Shown one piece after another: positions 15,620 through 58,378 of a stretch of 64,000 nt of DNA. The stretch spans positions 24,345 to 88,344 of the forward strand of contig CALSCP010002292.1 of assembly GCA_943704425.1 (NCBI GenBank), read 5' to 3'. The stretch comes from Ministeria vibrans ATCC 50519 (Eukaryota > Protista > Filasterea). The position numbers and the translations under genes were made by a program. The notes beneath the pieces are model-generated. The model saw only the letters and a list, made by a program, of their open reading frames with translations. It was not told the DNA's origin and ran no database searches. Positions within the stretch are counted from its first letter, which is position 1. Each line of letters opens with the position of its first letter.

Positions 15620-16032
<413 letters not shown>

Positions 16033-16069
16033 ATATTTATATGTTTTTACTAAAACTCTTTTTGCTTAG

Positions 16070-17389
16070 CCGTCGAGCGAGCCGGAGGAGATCATTGACA
16101 TGCGATCGTGTATGGCCGACTTTGCGTTTAGCTACAAGAAACGACCGCACGTGTTTCGTGCCAAGACGGCAGACATGAGGCAGTATTTGTTGCAGGCGAC
16201 CGACGACAACAGCATGTCGCAGTGGGTGCGAGCCATTCAGGATGCAAGCACCCAGCTTGGGACCGAGGAGGAAAAAGTCAAAATGCTAACGCGCCACCTC
16301 GAGGATTTGTCGCACGATGCCGACCATCGACGCAACACCAAAGTTGACGTGTCCACGACAGACCTAGATGCCGTAGAACTGACAGATGTGATCAGCAGCG
16401 ACGACGAAGGTGCATCGGGTGGCAAGAACAAGGCGCGGCGTCAGAACACGGCCGGCAGCGAAAGTAACCTCTCCTTGGGCAGCGAGCGCAGTAAAAAGAA
16501 GCTTACGCAGAAACTGGGTGGGCTGTTTCGCGGCGGTGGTGGTAGTGGTGCAAGTAGCAAGCGCACGTCGCAGGCCGTTGAGGAGACTGCAGCAGCGGCG
16601 AGTGCAGCAGCGGCTCTCCCCGAGTCGACCTGCTTTGGTGTCGACATGGAGGATTACATGGAGTTCCGCGACGACGAGGGCATTCTCATGCCCGAAGTCA
16701 TACTCAAATGCATCGAAAAAGTTGAAGAGTGCGGAATGCAGTCCATGGGAATCTACAGGTACGAACATAATTATAATAAAAATAGAAATAATATAATTAT
16801 ATTAACTCTTTTTTTTAAAAAAAAAAAAAAAAACTCTCTGTGTAGAGTGTCTGGAAACTCAAGCGAGATCCAAGAGCTCAAGAAACAGTTTAACACAGGG
16901 GCACATGCAGTGGACTTGTCCGGCGTCACAGACGTTAACAATGTCACTGGCGTTCTGAAGGTGACCTACTTAGCCATTCGTATTAATGTATCAAATGCGA
17001 TGTTGATCCTTTTTTTTTCGCGTCTCTCCTTGCTTGTAGTTGTATTTCCGCGAATTGCCTGATCCATTGATGACGGACAAGTTTTATCGAACGTTTCTCA
17101 ACTCGTTTCGAACGGGCACGCACGACGAGAAGTTGTACGCGATGAAGGACACTCTGGCTCAACTGCCGCTGCTCAACCGACGGGTTCTCAAGACACTGGT
17201 GGAGCATCTGTCGCGCGTGTCGCAGTACGAGGCCGAAAACCGTATGGCCGTGAGTAATCTAGCTATTGTGTTTGGTCCGACCATTTGCCGACCAGCCGTG
17301 GAAGACCCTACCCTCATGATGATCGATATGAATGTGCAGGTACACCATTTGATTAGTAATGGTGTGGGTTATGTTCTTCTCAACACTTT

Positions 17390-21795: not shown

Positions 21796-23051
21796 TCAAA
21801 GCTGGTAGCGCACATAAGGCACTTCGACATCCTCGCCCTCGGCATCGTTGCAGCAGATCTCAAAGACAAGGAACTTGGTATGGGCCGGAATGTCCTTCTT
21901 GGAGACCACCTTGACCACTTCAGAGAGACTATAAAGTTTGTGTGAGTGTGTGCGTGTGCGTACGTGTGTGTGAAAAGGAGGGGAAGTAATGGGTGAGGTG
22001 ATTAGACTTACGGCATAGCCAGACGCTCCTTCTTCTTGTCCTTGTTCATGAAGAAGGAGTACAGCATCGAGACACCGCACGAGAGCATTGTAATCTCCAG
22101 TTTGTGTTCCTTCTGGAAGTAGTCAATGAACCCTTGAAGAGTCATCGAACCACGCACGTCAAATCGGTCCCACAGTGTCCATGTCGTCTCCCCATACTAA
22201 CAAATTAAAACCACAACGTTAGGATGGAAAACAAACACAGACAAATTGCAACGAGAAAAAAGAAAGAAAAAAAAAAAAGCACACACACACACACAAAAAT
22301 CAAACACAAGAAAGCAAACAGAAACCAAAAAATACATTTACCTTGTTCTGGACAGGAGCAATGGGCGTGGAGAAGGCAGCAAGAGGCAAAGCCAGGTTCA
22401 CAAAGCCTAACAATAATAATAATAAATTGAAGTTAGTTGTTTCGTTTTTGTTTTCTATAGGAAATATATAAAGATATACCATTCTTGAATGCATCGAGGT
22501 CCACCTTGGCCTTACCGGCCAGGAAGGCGACAATCTTGTACATCTCAAGGTTGACCAGACCGACCACAAGGGCGGTGGTGGTCGCAATGGCCGGAATGAT
22601 CTTGCCGGCAATCAGCTTGGACTTGTGCTTGTCTGCCGGAGCAATCGCGTAGTTGGCTGCACGCACATTGGATGTCTATAGTATGTTATATATTAGTTCA
22701 AAAATACGGGAGAATTGACGGCGGAGGTGATCCTTACGGCTGTGATATAGTCCATGTGGAAGTTGGTATCGTCGTCCTTTTCAAACTCGTGGGGGACCAT
22801 TCGGTAGCCGGCCAGCGAGCCTGGTGCTGGCAGTGACTTGATCATGCTCTCCAACTCCTCTGCGTCTGTCTGCGCACCTCCTTGGTCCTCCTTAGCCTCA
22901 GCGTCCGACACGTGGATCTTGACTCCCTGGCGTGGCTGGAATGCCGGAATGTTCACGCCCTTGATTACTTCAACAAACTAAAACAAAAAAAACAGCAAGG
23001 GATCAATCTAAAATGAACGACATTTCACACACACACAGACACACACACACA

Positions 23052-23123
<72 letters not shown>

Positions 23124-24299
23124 ACAAAGACACACCACAAAGACACGCACACACGAAAGAAAGAGAGAGCGAGAGAAAGAAGACACACACAGCGAGAGAC
23201 ATACATCGAGAAACGTGTCATTAATGTAACTCAGTCAGTTACATATTATAGCTTGATACGATGATCTTGGTGACGGCGACGGACGTGAGAGGCGTCGAGG
23301 GTGCGCCTTTCCAGAGGGTTGCATTGCCACAGACTGCACTGATGGCAAAGTTCCAGCCAAACACTGCGACAGGGAAGTTGAAGGCACTGATCACACCCAC
23401 TACGCCCAGTGGGTTCCATTGCTCCATCAACATGTGCTGCGGTCGCTCTGAGGGAATGATCTTGCCGCTCAGCATACGTGACAGACCCACTGCGTAGTCA
23501 CAAATGTCGATAAACTCTTGCACCTAATGCAAAAGTAAACACAAAACATCACCACATCTACGAATACTAAGCACTTTTCACAGACACTTACACACACACA
23601 AACATTGCAACATGCGTGCACCTTGTCTGTATCGGTGTGGCCCTTGAGGCCGTAGTTTTGCGCGTAAAGGTTGGCAGCGGACACAACAAACTCCATGTGA
23701 GTAGCATCCTCGCCATCAAAAGTCTGTGGTTTGGGGCATCGCTTAGGACCTGACCAGAAGGGCTGGCCCGACGACGTCACCTTCAAACAATATGAAAAGA
23801 AAGCATGAGAGTCACACACACATAAACATAATATCATTTGAAATGTGAATGCAAACCTGGTCGGGAGGGAAGTTGAAGAGCAGCTGACGAATCTGGTTGT
23901 CAAACAGGTCTTGAAATTGCAGGCGAGCCCAGACAATGCAATCGTCAAAAGTGAGCGGGCGGTGGGTGACAAGCGCCTCCTTGATGGACGACAGTGTCTC
24001 CATGATCTAAAAAGACACGACACCAAGGGAAATGTTGAGTCGCACTCGATGCAAAAACAAAACGTTTACCTGGCTTCCCGACTGCTTTTGGAGCTGTTCA
24101 AGGTAGTCTGACTGGCCAAGGTAAGCATTGACATTCTCGGGAGTGTTTGCAAAAACCCCCTCGAATCTGTCGCGCGCCCACTGCAGCGTATGCTCGATAG
24201 CATTCGGAAAATTCTTCAGAGTGCAAATGGGAATAGACTTCTCCGGAGGGTCTTGCGATGACGAGTACGACTCTGTGACGTGCGGGAACACAACCTATT

Positions 24300-24336
<37 letters not shown>

Positions 24337-24347
24337 NNNNNNNNNNN

Positions 24348-24405
<58 letters not shown>

Positions 24406-25638
24406 TACCTGAGTGTTTCCTTTGGTACCGAGTGTTCCCGACTCAAGAAGAGGCTTGCCGTAGAACACGCAGCGACGATCCATGTACATTCGAGCCTCGA
24501 CGTTGTCCAGGGCATTGGTGACACCATTCAGGCTGGCGAAAAAAGCGTCGTCGTAGACATTCTCAGTGTCAACACCCACACGGCTCTGGTGGGCAATGAC
24601 ATTGAAGGATGGGTTCATGACCTTGGCGGCCGCTGCCGCAGTGTCCGACTTGAGCTTCTGCACGTCCCAGGGACGGAAGAGGAACTGGCGATTGAGATTG
24701 CTCTTTTCAATGGTGTCCATATCGGTGACGGTGACACGACCAGCCTCGCTCGCACCCAGTCCCATCAAAGCCCAGCACTTGAGCATTTCGCACCCAATCG
24801 CACCGGCACCCACCAAAAACTGATGTTGCGACTCCATCAGTGCCTGGTACTTCTTGCCAAAAACGGCAATCTGTCCGTCATAGCGCGAGCCCGTCATGGC
24901 ATAGTCTTCTGGATCGACCATCTCGTCCGCGTCCTCCACAAGCGACTCGAGACTGTCAAAGTAAAGGTACTAGAGAGAAAAAGATTAATAATTATTAATT
25001 ATAAGAAAGACGTTATTATTATAATAATAATAATAAACAGGAACGTGCGCTGTTGATTTGAGCAAAAAGATTCAAAACAAAAACAATAAACCAAAACAAT
25101 CCCAAAAAAAAAACACTCACTTGGACAATGGGGTGAAACTTGCCAGAGCAAGCCTTGAGGACTTCCTGAGCGGCAAATCCACCAATAAAAGAGTTCATTG
25201 GCGAGAGATTGCCCTGAGCCTGGTAGGCCAGCTTGGTGAGGAGCTTCTCGTCGAGCGTCTCCACCTTGGACGTGTCGGGGGCGGCGGCGTTGATCTCGGC
25301 GGCAATCTCCAGGACAGTCTTGGCATCGGCCGAGTTGCGCGGCGCCGGCTGACGACCACCGTTACGCTTGGCAAAAGCGTCAAGTGCCTGGTAGCCAATG
25401 TGGAGCTGTGCGGGTCGGTCAAACTTAGCCCAGTCGGAGATGAGCATGTCGGGTGCGGCAAGCGACTCCTTGAGCGACTTGAACGTCATCGTCTTGGGCA
25501 TCTTCACCTGCTTGGCAATGCCGCCACGCACATACGGCGAAAAGCCAGTGGTGTCGTCAATGGAGAATGTGTAAGGGCCCAGAACCTAAAAACAAAGTAA
25601 GAGTAATAGTTTTAATGAGTTAATAATATAATAATAAC

Positions 25639-25674
<36 letters not shown>

Positions 25675-26806
25675 TAAAATAATAATATAATTATGATTAT
25701 CATCAGTATTATCATTATTATAATAATAATAATAATAATAATAATAATTATTATTGTAGTTGTTTTTCTATCTACCTTGATGGGCACAGGCTCGCGGTCG
25801 TTGATCTGCTCCATTCCATGAACCTCGCTGAAGGAGACATAGTCACCGTCTTCGAGGCCGTGGCGGGTTTCGTCGAGGCACGTGACGACGCCCTCCTTGT
25901 CCGAGGTGATGGATGCGACCATGACAGAGGTGGCAGGTTCGCCGTTGACGTCGTTGATGACAAAATCTTTGCCAAAGTCGCAGAAGAGCTGGGCAAAGAG
26001 ACCGCGCGTGTCGGCAATGACCGTGTGAGCGTTGTTGGCGCGCGCAGCCTCGTTGACACGAAGCTGTTCGTCAAGCGACGAGCGTGTGAGCACAATGACC
26101 TGGAACTGGGCGACAAGCTCGTCGGTGAGCTCGCCTGTGTGCACCTCCATCTTGACATAATTGTTGAGTTCGGCAAGACGCGGAAGGGTCACTTCAGCAC
26201 GATTTTTGCCAACATCTTCGGGACGCAGGAAGAACTGCGACGACAGATCGGCCATAGTGACTGCCTCCCTGTCGTGGATGGTGACCGACTTGACGCCGGC
26301 CAGCACGACATTCTTGGCAATCTCAATGCCCAGACCCGACATGCCCGAGATGAGCACGTTGCTCGACCCCATCTTCTTCATCGCTTCATGGCCCAGGACA
26401 TACAGCTACAGAGACGACACGTGAGATGCGGAGCCACGGCAGGTCGAGCGTCGATGCGTGCGCGCGCGCGTCACACACACAAAGAGCGCAGAGTGAAGAA
26501 ACGCGAAGGTTTGCAAACAATGTATAAAAAAAAAAAAAAAAAAAAAAAAGAAGAGAATGGACTCGACAGGCGTCGCCCGGACGAAGACACACTGGCACCA
26601 TGTGGCACGGGGCCCTCTTCAGGCCTTCCAGCGACGCCGCGGGGTGCGCAGACCTACCTGGCGGCTGTACAGGCCCTCGTCGATGCTATCTTGCGCGGTG
26701 TCCATTTTCTGTGAAACGGAAAAAAAGAAAAAAGAAAGGGCGAGAGTGTGTGTGTCAGGGATCAAGGTCGGCAGAGGGACGAGGTGGCACTACGTACTTC
26801 AGACAT
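21796..26806 (-). CDS. UBA1: Ubiquitin-activating enzyme E1
   Basis: [38 protein letters not shown], catalytic [32 protein letters not shown] and terminal EVPYVRY. ATG at 26806. Confidence 0.97.
23260..23523 (-). CDS. ALDH7A1: Isolated 264-nt exon of aldehyde dehydrogenase family 7 (antiquitin) inside a UBA1 intron
   Basis: Encodes [61 protein letters not shown]. Flanked by a TAG acceptor (23526-23524) and a GT donor (23259-23258). Confidence 0.9.
24337..24347. other. Assembly gap flanked by poly-A/poly-T in a UBA1 intron
   Basis: N characters. Confidence 1.
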
Positions 26807-30536: not shown

Positions 30537-31564
30537 TTATGATGAAGAAGATTTTACAAAGGCGGCTTTGGCAGTGCGGTACGCTTCTGCTTGTCGCTCC
30601 AGTGACGCACGCAACGCCGCAATGTCGAGCACAAGATCCAACCCTAACAAAAGAGCGATTGAGATCGAGAGAGAGAGAGAGAGGTGAGGAGATAGAAACA
30701 AAGTGATAGATAGAGGGGAGGAGATAGAAACAAAGTGATAGATAGAGAGGAGGAGATAGAAACAAAGTGATAGATAGAGGGGAGGAGATAGAAACAAAGT
30801 GATAGAGAGAGGCATAGAAATGCGCGATATGAGGCACCTTTGGAGTACGCTTGCTGTGATTGCCGCAATGACAGGGGTGGAAGCATGGCAAACCAGCGCA
30901 GTGGGTCTGTGACTTTCTTTTTGCCCTTCTGCTTCACTTGGTCGGGCTCCTTGTCCTCTCGCTCCTTCTTGTTGCTACTTGACGTGCCCTTTTCCTTTGA
31001 CGTGTCCTTTTCCTTCGACGTGGGCGATGCGCCTACACCTGTACTGTCTCCCTTTCTGCGCTGGCGCACGCCTGACGGCGTCGGCGACGACGAGGGCTCG
31101 GGCGCAGGCGTGCCGGGCCCCTCCTCGTCCGCCACGACGGCCTCCCTGGTCGCACGCGTCCATCGATGCGACTCTTCGTCGACAGTCGCCACCGACGTGG
31201 CATTCATCGAGGCTGGGAACTGCAGTGGAGTGATAGGGACGCCGCTGTAGCGTGCCTGCGCCAGGAACAGATTGCCCTACGCAAAACCAAGAGTGTTACG
31301 CCATCGTCCCTTTCGGTCTCCTCTCGCTGTACTTGTCTCAGCGATTCGCTTAGCTGTGCGTTAAGAGTCTAATGTGCCAAAGGAGCATTCCACAGGAAGC
31401 GAGGAGGAGGAGGAGGAGGAGGAGGAGGAGGAGGAGGGTGCGAAGGCAAAGAGAGAGTGGATGAGGTGTCAGTGTGTTTGTCTGTCATCACACTTGCAAA
31501 CCTGAAGTTTTTCGTAGTCTTCCAGAAAGGACAAGGCCAACCCATCGAGATGTTCGTCGTTCAT
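30537..31564 (-). CDS. CCDC115: V-ATPase assembly factor CCDC115/Vma22-like
   Basis: Coiled-coil N-terminus, G.LFLAQARY, and the conserved DPLRWFAMLPPLSLRQSQQAY motif. Confidence 0.8.
30685..30812. repeat. ~32-nt intronic minisatellite GAGGAGATAGAAACAAAGTGATAGATAGAG x4
   Basis: Directly visible; contains the same core motif on the minus strand. Confidence 0.92.
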
Positions 31565-37935: not shown

Positions 37936-39359
37936 CTACAGAGAGGGTGGGAGTGCCATGTGGGCGCGGGCGGCTCGGCGACGGTAGCGCGAGACGCACT
38001 TGCGTCGACGCACACTCGACAGAACATTGCCTTTCGCATCGTGTGTGGGAATGCCCCACTCGTCAAATGTAGCATACCGACCAGTTTTCACGAATGAATT
38101 CTACAACCAAACAAAAGAAACAGCATCAGAGAGGGAAGAGAAGGGTGAGACAATAGACCAGGGCAAAACCGGCCATACTCGGACGTCTTGTTCACGCTCC
38201 TGTTGTGTCTTGCGCGCTACAACAGCCCTATGCTCGCCTGTACGGGTTCCTCCCGACTTCTCGTGTCCTACACTATCGCGAATTCGCATTCCCACCATCC
38301 GCAGCACATCTGATCGCAATCGATCACAATCCTCCAAATCTTCCTTTTGCCCCTCTCGCTACACACACACACACCACAAAGACACACACCACAAAGACAC
38401 ACACCACAAAGACACACACCACAAAGACACGCACCACAAAGACACGCACCACAAAGACACGCACACACACACACACACACAATTATATATACAACAATGC
38501 GTTTTAGTGTTATCTCCGTTGTGTTTGTGGGAGTACGTTTTTGAGTGCATCTGAACGGACAGTGGCGCGGAAGCTCTGAAATAGATGCAGCACATGATCC
38601 ATTTCACTGCTCGACGTCACAAGAGCGGCCAGTCCATTCTACGCAAATGCATCAGTTGAACAACGCACACGCGCGACACGCAACTGACCTCTTTTGGGCG
38701 GGTCATTTCAAGGCCAAAGAGACAGAGCATACGATCGACAAAGTGTGCAACAGAGCGCACCAAATGGACATGGACTGCACTCGGACCGACAGAGAGTGCT
38801 CCGCTGCGCTCATGGTCGCTCTCCTGGTCACTACTCTCGTTTTGACTGTGGTTGTTGCTCTTGCGCGCTAGGTACGCATTGGTCTTTTGTACCAAATCCA
38901 GAATGCGCTGTAGCGCGGTCGGCGTGTCAAAGTCATCGCGAAGCGCACAGTCAATCTCATTGCGTGTCCCAAATAACCTGCACCACAGAGGAAATTGGTC
39001 CGTTTTCGAACACATTCGAATGTTCCTTACGCCTTTTGCAGCGCCTCCTCCGCAATGGTCCACTGTACTTCCTGCGCATTCTCCAGTGTCTCCACTGTCG
39101 TGAAGAATCCTTTTAGTCGCTTCTCGGTCGCAAGTGCCTATCACAGCCACAAGAGGAGAAAACCAAAATTGAGAACAGCAGCGCTCTCGGTGAGTGTGCT
39201 TCTAACCTGCGTCATACTGGAGTCGGTCCATTCAGTGCGCGATCGGTATTTGGACTGAAGACAAAGCAAACGGAAGTGTTGTGCAGTGTATTGCCCCAGA
39301 AAGTCCTACACGTGTACACAATGATCCCCAGTTGCACACCTGCCACACACAAAATCTCT

Positions 39360-41335: not shown

Positions 41336-41922
41336 TTTTTTTGAAGAATTATTATGTTTCACGTATTTGGATAGATCCTTTCAATCTATTCAATCGCTTT
41401 CTTTCACCAAATTCAACGAATCGCAAATTCGCCGTTCGCACGACACACTTTACTCATCTTGCTGCATGAATTCCAAACCGGTTCCTGGGTCCGGAATAGA
41501 CCAAGACGCGCGACCTATCACTCCCGTTCGCGACGCTGTTCTTGACGACGCGGTAATCAATTCCCCTGCCTCCCCTTCCCGCGGCAACTCACGACTACAC
41601 AAGCTCTGCTTTGTCCTCGATCATGTCCACCGTGCTCTCATTAGTTTGATTCTTTCGCGTGCTTTCTTTCTTCTGCTGCACTTGATTTTTCTTCGTCGTT
41701 GTCAATGGCAACGAAATGTCAACATCCACCCCAACCCTCTCTCTCTCTCCCACTCACACTTCGTCAAACTAAACGCCTCTTCGTCGCCATCCTGTAACCT
41801 GGTCTGGCTGTCTCTTGAGCGTGTTCGCTGTGTCCTTCAGAAACCCCTCCATATCCATCCCTCTCGTGATTCTTACTCTCGAATAATCCAAAACTTTTTC
41901 TTGCACTGTTTCTCTGGTGCAG

Positions 41923-44900
41923 ATTGTCGAGGCTCCCGTCACCAGCAGCGAGTGGGTGCACCGTTTTGGCGTGCAAACCACCAAACTGACATTCAATCGA
42001 GTGCTCGCCGACTGTGGCTTCGGCGACGACGACTTTGATGCGTTCGCCGACACTCTCTCAACCGATTTGCAGCGCCACCTTGGCACTGGGCTCTTCGACT
42101 ACTATCGCGATCACGAGCCCACGGGCACATCCTGCGCTAAATCGACTGCCTCGTCCTCTTCTTCGTCGCATGGCCGACTCATGCAAGAGTGCGAGCGGCG
42201 CTTGGCGCTGCACCTTCGTGTGTGTCAGGCGCGTCGTGACTTCCTCAAGCGTGGTAGCCGAGCAACCTTTGGCCTGCTTACTGTGCCTGAGACTGTGCTC
42301 ATTCTCGACACATCAGGTCTTACCTCGTACACCGTCGAATTCCTCAAGGCGTCACTCATGACACTCGTACGCGAGCAATTCTCGCAGCTCAAGCTTGTCA
42401 ACGCAATTCTGTGTGGGCGTCACCCGGACTCCAGCGAGCCCGACCTCTTTTCGGGACGTGCCGTGAGCCCAAGTACATCGCAACTCGACGATCTTTGTGC
42501 ATGGATTCGCGTCAAGGTTCGTCTCGACGCGGCCTCCAGCAAGCCCAGCCCGCCCGCTCTAGCGCCCGCCCTGCGCGCCGCCTTTGCCGACGAGCGCATC
42601 CAGTCGGTAATTTTGGTGTCGCACTCAGCCCCAGGCGAGTCTGCAGACACCCTTGTCACTCAAGTGCTCGAGACCAACTCGCGGCGCACTCTGCCCGTCC
42701 ATGTCGTTGCGTACAACCCTCCCTTTACATCCGAGGCAAGTGAGTTCCACGACAAGCTCACACGAGCAACACGCGCGTCGCTCAAGATCGTCGCTCCCGC
42801 CGCAAATATTCCCTCCGCGGCCAGCAGCATCAGCACTAGTGTCCGTTCATCCATGCCCATATTATCTGCCGATTCGGAAGACCAAATTGTCGCTGGCGAA
42901 CTCGCGCTCGCCCGTGAGTCCCTCGAGCGCCTGCGACGTTTCCGCAAGTCGCTCGCGAAGAAACGTGCTGGGCGTTGCACATCCGTGGTCAACAGCGGCT
43001 GTACTGCAAGAATCACTACACCACACCATGGCGATCCCTGGCTTGCCATCCACGGCCTTACATCCCGACACCTGGACATCGCGTCGCACCTCAAGCCCAT
43101 TGCGTTCAAGCACTGCCCCGGTGCCCACTTCTGCCACCACCTTGACATGGTCCACTACGTCTTTCCCGACGGACGCACACGCCACGTTCGCTTTACTCGT
43201 GCTCTAGGCGACGCCTACGCCATCCAAATCCAAGGCGCAATTGACCTCTACACCGAACGCGTCGCGTGGCTTGCCCGCGGCTCCCGCGCCATCTTTGGCG
43301 AACTGCCCAAAACGGATTCGGCATCTAGTTCTGCAAGCTCGAGCTCGCGCTCCACGACTTCGTCTGTCGTTGTGATTGTCGACACCAGCCTGAGCATGCA
43401 GCCTCGCCTGGCGGTGCTCAAAGACAATCTCATGCGTCTGCTGCGCGAACAAATCGCCGGTCAACGCGCCTTCAACTTTGTCCAGTGCTCCACAGAGGCG
43501 ACTCCGTTCCGCCCGGCCGTCGTCCAGCCTACGCCGTCTGCCATCGACGCTGCCGCTGCCTGGATCCGCGCCTTGCACGCCGACGGTTCATCCAATGTCG
43601 ATGCTGCCTTGCAGCTTGCCCTGCGTGACGTCGGCGCGCACACCATCTTCTTCATTACGGACGGTCGCCCCGATCAGCCCGAGGCCTACCTGCTTGAGCG
43701 CGTCACCGAGACCATCCGTGCACGCGGCCCTCACGCCCCCGTCACCATCAACACCATTTCCTTCCACATGAGCGATCCCGACGCCAATCAGTTCCCGCGC
43801 GACCTCGCCGCTCTCACCTCTACCGGTCGCTTCTTCCAGGTGTCGCGCGCAGACCTGCCGTACACACGCGATGCGCAAACGGGCGCAGTTGAAATCACCC
43901 AGCTGAGCCTTGACGCGCGCGTGCGGGCCGTCCAGGAAGAAATTCTCTTGGCACAAGACTACTTGCGGGTTGCACGCGAACTGTGTGACCAGTGCGAGGG
44001 AAAGGGTCCGGCAGCAACGGCACGCGCTGAGCAACGACGCAAGGCGGAACACAAGGCCCGTCTGGGCATGTCCGACTCGCGACTTCTCGAGCTGCGCGCC
44101 GGACCTCGCTGGCATCACATGAGCTCGTCGCGTCCAGGCGACGCCCAATGGGAGGCGCAGCAGCGATCTATGGCTAAAATCGAGACTGTCAAGCTTCGCG
44201 AGTTTGCTGCACGACGGGCGTCGCAGCGTGCCAAACTGGGCCCCACTCAGCGCGCCGCCATGGAGAAGGAGGACGCCCGTCGTCTTGCTGAACGCACCGA
44301 AGAACTCGAGTCGCGTCTCCGTGGCACCACAGCTCAGTCTCTTGTGACGTCCGTTCGTGCCACGCCAGAGCAACAAAAGAAGGCGGGCAAGGCGCAAATA
44401 CGAAAGATGAATAAGATGACGAAGGGCGAGCCACAACACATTCGTCCCGAGCGAGTGTGCTCGACGCACGACTGGCTCAACGGCGGTGCGTCACTCGAGC
44501 AGCGAAAACTCTCCATCTTTGACGTGTTTAACAGCATGGTGGTGCGCCACTCGCCCAAGTACGTCAAGATGCTGGGCAAGGAGGTACACGCACGCTACTG
44601 CGAGCACGTCTACGACACCTACCAGTTTGTTGACGGTGACATGGAGCATATCAACCCGCAGGCAGCCCACATCCAGCAGTACCTCCTCGACGTCAACGAA
44701 GCTGTTGAGCTGTATCGCCAGCGACTCGTCTGGCTTCAACGCCTTCCGCGCTCTCTGCTCGGCGTCGTCGCCGCCGAGAGCGTCGTCATTGCAGTGGAGC
44801 TGTCGCCTCGCACTCGCGACCATGCAGACCTCATTGTGAAAGCGCTCCAGCTGCAGCTGAAGGAGCTTGTGCAACGCAGCGCCCTCGTCGACCTGGTTCT

Positions 44901-47568
44901 CTTTGACGAGTGCGGCATGCACGCGCTTTTTGGACGTCAGGAACCACTGGACGACGAGGAGCGCGCGGCAGAGGCGAGGTCATTTGTCGACGAACTGGAC
45001 TGGGGCAAGTTCGCAGACGGACGACTGCGCGTGGAGCAGGAACAGCATGACGGCGACGGCACGGCAATCATTTCCGAGGTGTTGCGCGTGATATGCGCAC
45101 GTGGAGGAGCCGATGACACGGGCGGGGACACGGTGGATGTGGTACATGTGCTTATGAGCAGTGCAGTGGACGCTCCGGCCGACGCGCTTGTGGTCAGCGC
45201 ACGCGACGGCGAGACGCCCACGCGTGTGCATACCGTTGCATTCAACACGGACGACGACACGCACGCCGTCTTGCGCAATGTCTCACTGGTCACCGGTGGT
45301 CACCATTTGCGATGTGATGTCATGGATGAGTCGTTGAAGGTGGAGTCGGACGACACGCGCCTGCTTGAGCGTGAGATGGCTCGTGCCGACGAGTACAAGA
45401 AGCGTGCCAACGAATTTGTTCGCGCGCCGGTCCACCCCGAGCGCTCCTCTGTGCCCATTTGGCAACCCTCTCGTGCGCGTCCTGGTGTGCCCAAGGAGGA
45501 GGACAACCCACCACCGCGTCTACTCGAGCTGCGTGCAAAACTGTCGGCGACACGGCGGACCGTCTCGCAGACGTCCAGGCCCGCCAGCGCTGCGCCTTCG
45601 ACGTCGACCTCGTCAATTGCAAAGGGGAAAACAACAGGAGCGCGTTCGGGGGTCATGGAACAGCGTCCGAACACACCTGTCCTGCGGGGACTCGCCTCAC
45701 AATTGCGTGCGTCCGCGTCACAACCCCTGCTGCGACACGCATCGGCGTCGTTCGCTGCCCGACGCCCAGGCCAGCCAATGAACGAGCCCAAGGTGCATGG
45801 ACGCTCGATTGTGGGACATTCCGCAGTGGCATGCTCCTCCGACGATGGGTACTTTTATGGGGCGAGTGTCGAGTCGTGGTTGGGGCGTGACGGGCGCTTT
45901 CTTGTGTCGTTCACTTCGGAGCGCGTGAAGCCAAGCGACAGCGATGGTGACGATGGCTACGATACCGCCGACGGATGTGAGGACGAGCATACACGCAATG
46001 AGCGACGTCAGCGTGAGAACCGCCGTCGTCAAGTTGACCCCGATCGGCTCTTTCCGGAGCGCAGTGCGGTGCGTGGCGAAGCGCTTGCTCCTGGAGATTT
46101 TGTGTTGTATCCCATGGCAACGAGACGTACCGAGAACACATTTGTACCCTGCATGGTTGTGGCGGGCGACAGCGACGGCGAGAGCGCTGGCGAGGTTGCT
46201 CTTGAGCCAGTTCACACACATCAGACGACGGTGGTGGAAGCGGACGCACGGGCGATTGTGCTTTTACGCGACACCTATGTGGATGTGTGTAGCGGAATCT
46301 ACGTGCAGGCACTGCGATTGTTGCGGTGCGTACACTCAACCAAACTGACACGTCGTGAGGCAGCTCTGATTCCCTCGGCGGAGACGGTCGCGGCAATGCG
46401 AGCGCACCTGGTGCATCTCGACGTGGATGTGGAAGGGCTCGAACGCACCGTCAACACCAGTTGTGACGACGGATACACCGTGGCAGGTGGCACGAGTGAG
46501 GTCAGTACGCTGTTGCGAACATCACAGTTGCTGGACGAGGAGCGCGAGCTGCGCTTTGGCGACATGGTCTACGTGCTCGATCGGCAGACGGGACGCTACT
46601 TTGTGGGCAAGGTAGGCAGTGACGAGCTGGATGAGGAGGGTGAGGAGGGAAGTGACGTTGAAGTCAGTCGGGGGCTGCACGACCGCTTTACAATCGAATT
46701 GTGTGACGGGGGGCGATTGCGTGGTGTGGCTCGAGACGATGTGTTCAGTGTGGACGACGACGCGGGTGCGCTTGTCGAGGACGGCGACTATGTGCTAGTG
46801 CGGCGTGTGGACCGTGCGTGTGGCGCGTCCGAAGACGACATCGACGCCACATCCGACTCGCTGGAGTGGGTCATGGAGCCAGCGCGTGTCGTGGCGAAAC
46901 GAGTGACTGTCGAGGAGGACGACGAGGAGGATGAAGAAGAGAATGGCACAGGCCTAGGGGATGATGGCCTGGGGCGCATTGAGACTGAGGAGTTTGCGGT
47001 GCGCTGTTCGTGGGACGATCACGAGTGGCGCTGGTGTCGACGCGAGCACCTCTTCTTGTTGACACAGCCCCTACACGACGACATGTTGCGCTACATGAGG
47101 TATCTGGACACGGCACGACGCAAGCGTGCGGCTGCCAAGAAGAAGAAGAAACGAGAGAGTGCGCAACGCAAGAAGGAACGAGAGACAGTCGCGAGTTCGC
47201 TGATGCGACGACTGCTTGAAAACGAGGGAGGTGCGGCAAGCGAGCGCAAAGTATTGTTGACGCAGCGCATTGCAAGCGAGCACTATCACGAGCGGAGGCC
47301 ATCGCGACGCGAAGCGCAACGGGAGCACAACGAGTCAACGCACACGGAACGCATGGTGGTGGTGGTACGCGACCCGTCGCCTGTCACGCCACCCTCCCCC
47401 GAGCCAGAGCCACCGTTGGTACTGTCGACGACTGAGCTGCGTGATAGTGTTCAGTGGAAGCACACTGACGAACGTCGCAGTCGTGCATGCAAAGCGCGCG
47501 AGCAAGATCTTGTGGAAGCAGAGCACTTGTTGGATCAAAGAGCATGTGTAGCAGACAGCGTGCGATAA
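41923..47568 (+). CDS. Large VWA3A/VWA3B-like protein (three vWA domains, C-terminal Tudor/DUF4537-like repeats); start probably near 41466, 3' end likely truncated
   Basis: 5.6-kb exon. The vWA strands are VLILDTSG, VVIVDTSLSM..FITDGRPD..INTISF and a degenerate third copy. Repeated WL..HGL..-type linkers, plus SDDGYFYGASV and DRQTGRYFVGKV modules. Confidence 0.8.
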   Translation: MVEAPVTSSEWVHRFGVQTTKLTFNRVLADCGFGDDDFDAFADTLSTDLQRHLGTGLFDYYRDHEPTGTSCAKSTASSSSSSHGRLMQECERRLALHLRVCQARRDFLKRGSRATFGLLTVPETVLILDTSGLTSYTVEFLKASLMTLVREQFSQLKLVNAILCGRHPDSSEPDLFSGRAVSPSTSQLDDLCAWIRVKVRLDAASSKPSPPALAPALRAAFADERIQSVILVSHSAPGESADTLVTQVLETNSRRTLPVHVVAYNPPFTSEASEFHDKLTRATRASLKIVAPAANIPSAASSISTSVRSSMPILSADSEDQIVAGELALARESLERLRRFRKSLAKKRAGRCTSVVNSGCTARITTPHHGDPWLAIHGLTSRHLDIASHLKPIAFKHCPGAHFCHHLDMVHYVFPDGRTRHVRFTRALGDAYAIQIQGAIDLYTERVAWLARGSRAIFGELPKTDSASSSASSSSRSTTSSVVVIVDTSLSMQPRLAVLKDNLMRLLREQIAGQRAFNFVQCSTEATPFRPAVVQPTPSAIDAAAAWIRALHADGSSNVDAALQLALRDVGAHTIFFITDGRPDQPEAYLLERVTETIRARGPHAPVTINTISFHMSDPDANQFPRDLAALTSTGRFFQVSRADLPYTRDAQTGAVEITQLSLDARVRAVQEEILLAQDYLRVARELCDQCEGKGPAATARAEQRRKAEHKARLGMSDSRLLELRAGPRWHHMSSSRPGDAQWEAQQRSMAKIETVKLREFAARRASQRAKLGPTQRAAMEKEDARRLAERTEELESRLRGTTAQSLVTSVRATPEQQKKAGKAQIRKMNKMTKGEPQHIRPERVCSTHDWLNGGASLEQRKLSIFDVFNSMVVRHSPKYVKMLGKEVHARYCEHVYDTYQFVDGDMEHINPQAAHIQQYLLDVNEAVELYRQRLVWLQRLPRSLLGVVAAESVVIAVELSPRTRDHADLIVKALQLQLKELVQRSALVDLVLFDECGMHALFGRQEPLDDEERAAEARSFVDELDWGKFADGRLRVEQEQHDGDGTAIISEVLRVICARGGADDTGGDTVDVVHVLMSSAVDAPADALVVSARDGETPTRVHTVAFNTDDDTHAVLRNVSLVTGGHHLRCDVMDESLKVESDDTRLLEREMARADEYKKRANEFVRAPVHPERSSVPIWQPSRARPGVPKEEDNPPPRLLELRAKLSATRRTVSQTSRPASAAPSTSTSSIAKGKTTGARSGVMEQRPNTPVLRGLASQLRASASQPLLRHASASFAARRPGQPMNEPKVHGRSIVGHSAVACSSDDGYFYGASVESWLGRDGRFLVSFTSERVKPSDSDGDDGYDTADGCEDEHTRNERRQRENRRRQVDPDRLFPERSAVRGEALAPGDFVLYPMATRRTENTFVPCMVVAGDSDGESAGEVALEPVHTHQTTVVEADARAIVLLRDTYVDVCSGIYVQALRLLRCVHSTKLTRREAALIPSAETVAAMRAHLVHLDVDVEGLERTVNTSCDDGYTVAGGTSEVSTLLRTSQLLDEERELRFGDMVYVLDRQTGRYFVGKVGSDELDEEGEEGSDVEVSRGLHDRFTIELCDGGRLRGVARDDVFSVDDDAGALVEDGDYVLVRRVDRACGASEDDIDATSDSLEWVMEPARVVAKRVTVEEDDEEDEEENGTGLGDDGLGRIETEEFAVRCSWDDHEWRWCRREHLFLLTQPLHDDMLRYMRYLDTARRKRAAAKKKKKRESAQRKKERETVASSLMRRLLENEGGAASERKVLLTQRIASEHYHERRPSRREAQREHNESTHTERMVVVVRDPSPVTPPSPEPEPPLVLSTTELRDSVQWKHTDERRSRACKAREQDLVEAEHLLDQRACVADSVR

Positions 47569-47679: not shown

Positions 47680-47689
47680 NNNNNNNNNN
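47680..47689. other. Assembly gap between (AG)n and poly-A
   Basis: N characters. Confidence 1.
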
Positions 47690-58168: not shown

Positions 58169-58280
58169 NNNNNNNNNNNNNNNNNNNNNNNNNNNNNNNN
58201 NNNNNNNNNNNNNNNNNNNNNNNNNNNNNNNNNNNNNNNNNNNNNNNNNNNNNNNNNNNNNNNNNNNNNNNNNNNNNNNN
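58169..58280. other. Assembly gap truncating the UBR5-like gene
   Basis: N characters. Confidence 1.
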
Positions 58281-58378
58281 NAAAAAAAAAAAAAAAAAAA
58301 AAAGAAAAAAAAACAAGAAAAAAAAAAGTTAAAAACAGTGAAAACCAAAACAAGAGACACGCGCAAGGGAGAAGAAGC

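Follow-up and report, generated by a model that had tools for sequence, protein, structure and literature searches.

An ALDH7 (antiquitin) exon inside a UBA1 intron of the Ministeria vibrans assembly: very probably a repeat-mediated mis-join

Split genes whose transcripts are put together by trans-splicing are known, for example HSP90 of Giardia and mod(mdg4) of Drosophila. Exon shuffling and exonization, in which a copied exon ends up in an intron of a different gene, form a second class of systems with which an exon found inside a foreign gene may be compared. A third class is technical: contigs built from short reads are reported to break mostly at simple repeats (PMC7757076).

Here we describe an exon of ALDH7 (antiquitin) that lies, intact and on the same strand, in an intron of the gene for the ubiquitin-activating enzyme E1 (UBA1). 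Both were found in a window of 64 kb, the whole stretch of DNA analysed (G000:C2292:24345-88344), and all positions given below without a contig label are positions in this window. The assembly (G000) comprises 29.7 Mb in 2860 contigs or scaffolds, and the remaining pieces of ALDH7 were found on two of these, C2681 and C1980.

The UBA1 gene and the exon in its intron

The features of the UBA1 locus, in the order in which they are transcribed after the gene itself, are as follows:

21796..26705 (approximate), minus strand: UBA1 (ubiquitin-activating enzyme E1), from ATG to stop (ending ..VPYVRYQL), about 10 exons; open frames, exon model made by eye
23622..23780, minus strand: UBA1 exon of 53 codons ending ..GHTDTDK, matching positions 99-149 of Pfam UBA_E1_SCCH (E 4.8e-21); donor GT at 23621-23620
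23524..23621, minus strand: left-junction segment of 98 nt, from the UBA1 donor (gtgcac..) to the ALDH7 acceptor (..ttttgcattag)
23260..23523, minus strand: exon assigned to ALDH7 (antiquitin) as its third coding exon, 264 nt, 88 codons, phase 0 at both ends; matches 2jg7 and NF050084; single copy
22978..23259, minus strand: right-junction segment of 282 nt, from the ALDH7 donor to the UBA1 polypyrimidine tract and acceptor
22801..22977, minus strand: first part of the next UBA1 exon, starting FVEVIKG.., matching positions 153-206 of Pfam UBA_E1_SCCH; acceptor AG at 22979-22978

The two junction segments differ in their repeats. In the left one (23524-23621), the sole simple repeat is an 11-nt TG run at 23590-23600, within a TG-rich stretch of 25 nt. 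The right one (22978-23259), read 5' to 3', holds the ALDH7 donor (GT at 23259-23258) with about 110 nt of unique intron, two copies of the 15-nt unit TGTGTCTTTGTGGTG at 23120-23147, a pure 68-nt (TG)n, that is, (TG)34, at 23054-23121, and interrupted TG. An earlier note on this DNA had described a stop-free exon of 264 nt (23523-23260) between UBA1 exons bounded at 23622 and 22977, with an AG/GT pair and phase 0 at both ends, and these coordinates hold. Its upstream intron of 98 nt with only a short TG run (given as ~12 nt) and its long (TG)n in the downstream intron were likewise recovered, the former run measuring 11 nt and the latter lying at 23121-23054.

The note's claim that UBA1 is complete without this exon also agrees with our data. 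In the Pfam scan, the UBA_E1_SCCH profile passes from positions 99-149 on one flanking UBA1 exon to positions 153-206 on the other, and the SCCH domain is therefore continuous without the ALDH7 codons. The acceptor that precedes the ALDH7 exon is ALDH7's own, since the start of the exon coincides exactly with the end of the preceding ALDH7 exon, located on C2681. Another intron of UBA1 contains an 11-N gap (24337-24347), with a long poly-A on one side and a long poly-T on the other.

The 88 amino acids of the exon were described as conserved ALDH7A1 sequence, and the searches bear this out. In the PDB search, they aligned with residues 118-205 of seabream antiquitin (2jg7, E 2.6e-43) and with residues 120-207 of human ALDH7A1 (2j6l), and the top matches were all antiquitin/ALDH7A1. 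The Pfam Aldedh match covered positions 91-176 (E 5e-22), and the NCBIfam family NF050084 (piperideine-6-carboxylate dehydrogenase) was matched on positions 80-167 (E 2e-42), with 145.7 bits versus 51.8 bits for the next family. Judged by its sequence, the 88-codon exon belongs to ALDH7-type enzymes and not to other ALDH families, far beyond chance. With the exon as query, the word-index protein search reached at most 77% identity, in proteins of 48-154 aa, a length range outside which full-length ALDH7 proteins fall, and no protein of this organism was among the matches. An exact look-up of three open frames in the protein collection likewise found none of them.

Both protein and DNA searches found the exon as a single copy in the 29.7-Mb assembly, the other ALDH loci being only 27-40% identical to it. 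No second copy or haplotig of the exon, of the UBA1 region or of the ALDH7 pieces on C2681 and C1980 was found assembly-wide, where all other matches were simple repeats. Within the 64-kb window, tblastn with the other ALDH7 exons found no further ALDH7 exon, as the earlier note had also reported.

The remaining ALDH7 exons and the breaks around them

A search of the whole assembly with NF050084 revealed ALDH7-grade pieces at three places only, namely on C2681, at the exon on C2292 and on C1980. The exons were scanned one by one, and only their lengths were summed. The pieces and their exons (E2 to E7) match NF050084 as follows:

C2681:15952-16191: ALDH7 5' piece, positions 2-81, at the very end of a contig of 16,261 nt
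C1980:31122-32531: ALDH7 3' piece with four exons, positions 157-474
E2, on C2681: positions 2-79
E3, on C2292, in the UBA1 intron: positions 80-167
E4, on C1980: residues 3-102 on positions 170-269, so that residue 1 falls on 168
E5, on C1980: positions 270-297
E6, on C1980: positions 299-444
E7, on C1980: positions 446-474

The exon scans tile NF050084 with neither overlap nor hole. On antiquitin 2jg7, the three pieces follow each other residue by residue (11-117, 118-205 and 206/207-307), and in Pfam Aldedh they cover positions 7-88, 91-176 and 179-275. All ALDH7 introns are GT-AG and their phases fit, with both borders of E3 (..GEGE/VQEF.. and ..TKII/SDVL..) in phase 0. The exon lengths (47+349+264+306+85+429+95) add up to 1575 nt in frame, or about 524 codons including a probable ATG exon of 47 nt, and GC3 is 0.66-0.75 across all pieces. 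The single-copy state of E3, together with its residue-exact tiling with C2681 and C1980, indicates that the exon in the UBA1 intron is the sole copy of the ALDH7 third coding exon. We take the exon to be an authentic part of ALDH7 (antiquitin, alpha-aminoadipic semialdehyde dehydrogenase), namely the third coding exon of a gene that this genome has only once.

The probable first coding exon (MLRANRILSLGLTTR.., 47 nt; L048:7587-7633, equal to G000:C2681:15586-15632) probably encodes a segment resembling a mitochondrial presequence, and a divergently oriented gene for a signal-peptide protein is situated ~200 nt away.

On C2681, the second ALDH7 coding exon (15837-16185) is followed by 28 nt of intron and by a 48-nt (AT)n, that is, (AT)24, inside which the contig stops, 76 nt past the exon. 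On C1980, the fourth coding exon (31155-31460) is preceded by gcttag, by a 90-nt (TG)n (31060-31149) and by a 10-N gap (31050-31059); the (TG)n directly abuts the gap and the exon begins 6 nt past it. Both introns that flank E3 in ALDH7 thus coincide with assembly discontinuities at simple repeats. The earlier note had raised the question of whether the other ALDH7 locus lacks exactly this exon, and it does: the locus is broken at both introns, by the (AT)n contig end on one side and by the N gap with (TG)n on the other. In the assembly, therefore, ALDH7 is gapped just where the exon belongs, which the note had named as one mark of a mis-assembly.

A JmjC-domain gene of the same orientation has its 3' end to the left of the C1980 gap. 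The join across this gap must itself be doubted, since some 16.7 kb of 5' sequence from ALDH7 would need to fit into 10 N. When the first part of C2681 was compared with what precedes the gap on C1980, neither an overlap nor a shared gene was seen. A possible minus-strand ORF tail (..RDIPIVHRVLKALDS.., ending in a stop) also runs into the gap (L047:7051-7150, equal to G000:C1980:31050-31149).

By rough inference, about 3% of the assembly is no more than 100 nt away from a gap or contig end. Were ALDH7 really dispersed, its two breaks would therefore both fall so close to such sites by chance in only ~0.1% of cases, again a rough figure.

Simple repeats and the origin of the placement

The window has short GT-AG introns and a GC content of about 52%, and nothing in it points to a human contig. 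Homopolymer or (GA)n runs flank three of its four N gaps, among them those at 47680-47689 and 58169-58281 as well as the 11-N gap in UBA1. Two N gaps also occur in 10 kb of C1980, where a poly-A run adjoins one and the (TG)n the other. The 15-nt unit found beside E3 has 335 copies in the 29.7-Mb assembly versus 0 for the reversed control, and is a genome-wide TG-associated repeat family and a likely assembly hazard. We considered this unit as a marker tying the fragment to C2292 and rejected it on account of those 335 copies. In the window, it occurs as a minisatellite set in TG tracts at 23120-23147 and at 38372-38461.

Compound repeats of the type (AT)6(GT)6 were found 87 times, versus 4 for the reversed string, and several lie within 70 nt of contig ends. 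Since TG-rich and (AT)(GT) compound repeats are so common, the (AT)n at the end of C2681 plausibly continues into the TG run left of E3. The strong orientation bias of compound microsatellites extends over the whole assembly, an example in the window being ~38462-38500. Two further observations concern coding sequences. The plus strand of the window contains an open frame of 1883 codons (41917-47568) for which the word-index protein search was empty at E 1e-30 (8000 candidates scored); it may be lineage-specific or of low complexity. A scan with PF00330 found the Aconitase domain of both family members in order, each on single contigs.

We consider it very probable that the placement of the ALDH7 exon in the UBA1 intron results from a repeat-mediated assembly or scaffolding mis-join. 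This reading is favored by the residue-exact tiling, by the single-copy state, by both ALDH7 breaks lying at simple-repeat discontinuities and by the presence of TG on both sides of the exon. The fragment is flanked by TG at 23590-23600 and at 23054-23121, the same simple repeat as that of the host UBA1 intron, and the donor locus is without exactly E3 and broken there, at the (AT)24 contig end and at the 10-N gap with its 90-nt (TG)n. In the real genome, E3 most likely has its place after the last ALDH7 exon of C2681 and before those of C1980, and its native introns would carry an (AT)n(GT)n-type run upstream and a long (TG)n downstream. The short-read assembly would have broken at these simple repeats, leaving a fragment of ~450 nt bounded by TG runs, and the (TG)n of a UBA1 intron on C2292 might then have received this fragment by threading or gap filling. 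Both joins in the UBA1 intron would thus go back to the assembler or to a library chimera, and the DNA itself would have neither.

Some points count against the mis-join. The left junction is gap-free, with no N, and its TG run is just 11 nt long. Since 11 nt is shorter than the usual k-mer or overlap lengths, this join would need permissive contig merging or gap closing, a repeat that had collapsed, or a template made chimeric, for example during amplification. Moreover, a genuine and very recent second copy would look identical in the assembly, with the copy placed once and the donor broken.

Such a copy is the main competing explanation, and we regard it as unlikely. A segment of ~450 nt (ALDH7 exon 3 with parts of its introns) would have been duplicated, with the (TG)n of the UBA1 intron as its target and by a route such as ectopic conversion or template switching from one TG microsatellite to another, while the original stayed in the ALDH7 locus; the assembler would then have collapsed the identical copies and placed one of them in UBA1. 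A gap-free left junction with 11 nt of TG is easier to understand as real DNA than as a k-mer join, and a collapsed two-copy segment would likewise break the donor locus. On the other hand, the donor breaks lie in long simple repeats that break the assembly elsewhere too, so that no duplication is needed to explain them. The assembly contains one copy only, by DNA and by protein, although an identical copy could have collapsed; such a copy must match the original almost perfectly and hence be very recent. An E1 enzyme would probably suffer from an in-frame exon with good splice sites within its SCCH domain, and in a draft of 2860 scaffolds the prior odds lie towards an artefact.

That ALDH7 is truly dispersed over three loci, with trans-splicing or selective splicing of an interleaved transcript, or that the exon is a cassette exon of UBA1, is highly improbable: the exon is intact, conserved, bounded by a canonical AG/GT pair, on the strand of UBA1 and compatible with its phase, but its phase-0 borders are ALDH7's own and the same strand with a matching UBA1 phase is expected about 1 in 6 times by chance, both other ALDH7 pieces stop at assembly discontinuities less than 100 nt from an exon border instead of in a context of their own (the coincidence of ~0.1%, roughly, given above), the SCCH profile of UBA1 runs on uninterrupted when the exon is left out, and the 88 aa are an internal slice of the ALDH fold (Aldedh 91-176) that would not make a domain by itself. 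The earlier note had left three readings side by side. The chimeric join is the one that the evidence favors; the captured cassette is not supported, given the continuity of SCCH and the slice-like nature of the 88 aa, nor is the interleaved or trans-spliced gene, given the pieces that stop at assembly breaks.

If the exon was mis-joined, its placement is most likely of no biological consequence. For users of the assembly it does matter: with the exon in phase and with good splice sites, gene predictors would splice 88 ALDH codons into UBA1, and would call ALDH7 piecemeal on three scaffolds. The case illustrates how a genome rich in microsatellites is broken up and wrongly joined at TG, AT and homopolymer runs, and other oddities of this assembly that look like split genes, fusions or nested genes should be tested against a mis-join first. 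Should the junctions be real after all, which we think there is little chance of, ~450 nt with one ALDH7 exon would have been copied very recently, via TG-microsatellite homology, into an intron of UBA1, an essential gene, with strand and phase both matching. This would show exon shuffling just as it begins, the donor copy being masked because the assembly collapsed it, and would offer a rare view of an exon moving into an essential gene by way of microsatellites.

Comparison with known systems

As in trans-spliced split genes, the exons of one protein are found at separate places, here of an assembly. Unlike in those genes, the pieces of ALDH7 stop where the assembly breaks instead of belonging to transcription units of their own, and E3, being internal, has both an acceptor and a donor. 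The likeness to exon shuffling and exonization is that the exon is phase 0-0, keeps both splice sites intact and occupies a phase-0 intron of a different gene with the same orientation. In contrast to typical cases, there is no second copy, no divergence and no sign of use by UBA1, and the donor locus is broken in the assembly.

The closest likeness is to repeat-mediated mis-assembly of short-read drafts, in that a fragment is bounded by the microsatellite of the host site, the donor gene is broken exactly there and everything is single copy. The gaps across these scaffolds also lie at simple repeats, a general behavior of such assemblies (PMC7757076). What departs from the typical mis-assembly is the left junction, with only 11 nt of TG, below the usual k-mer. 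As for ALDH7A1/antiquitin itself, and its bacterial counterpart, the piperideine-6-carboxylate dehydrogenase of NF050084, the pieces give a complete CDS of ~524 codons with a probable N-terminal presequence exon. The protein is ordinary; it is only its placement in the assembly that is odd.
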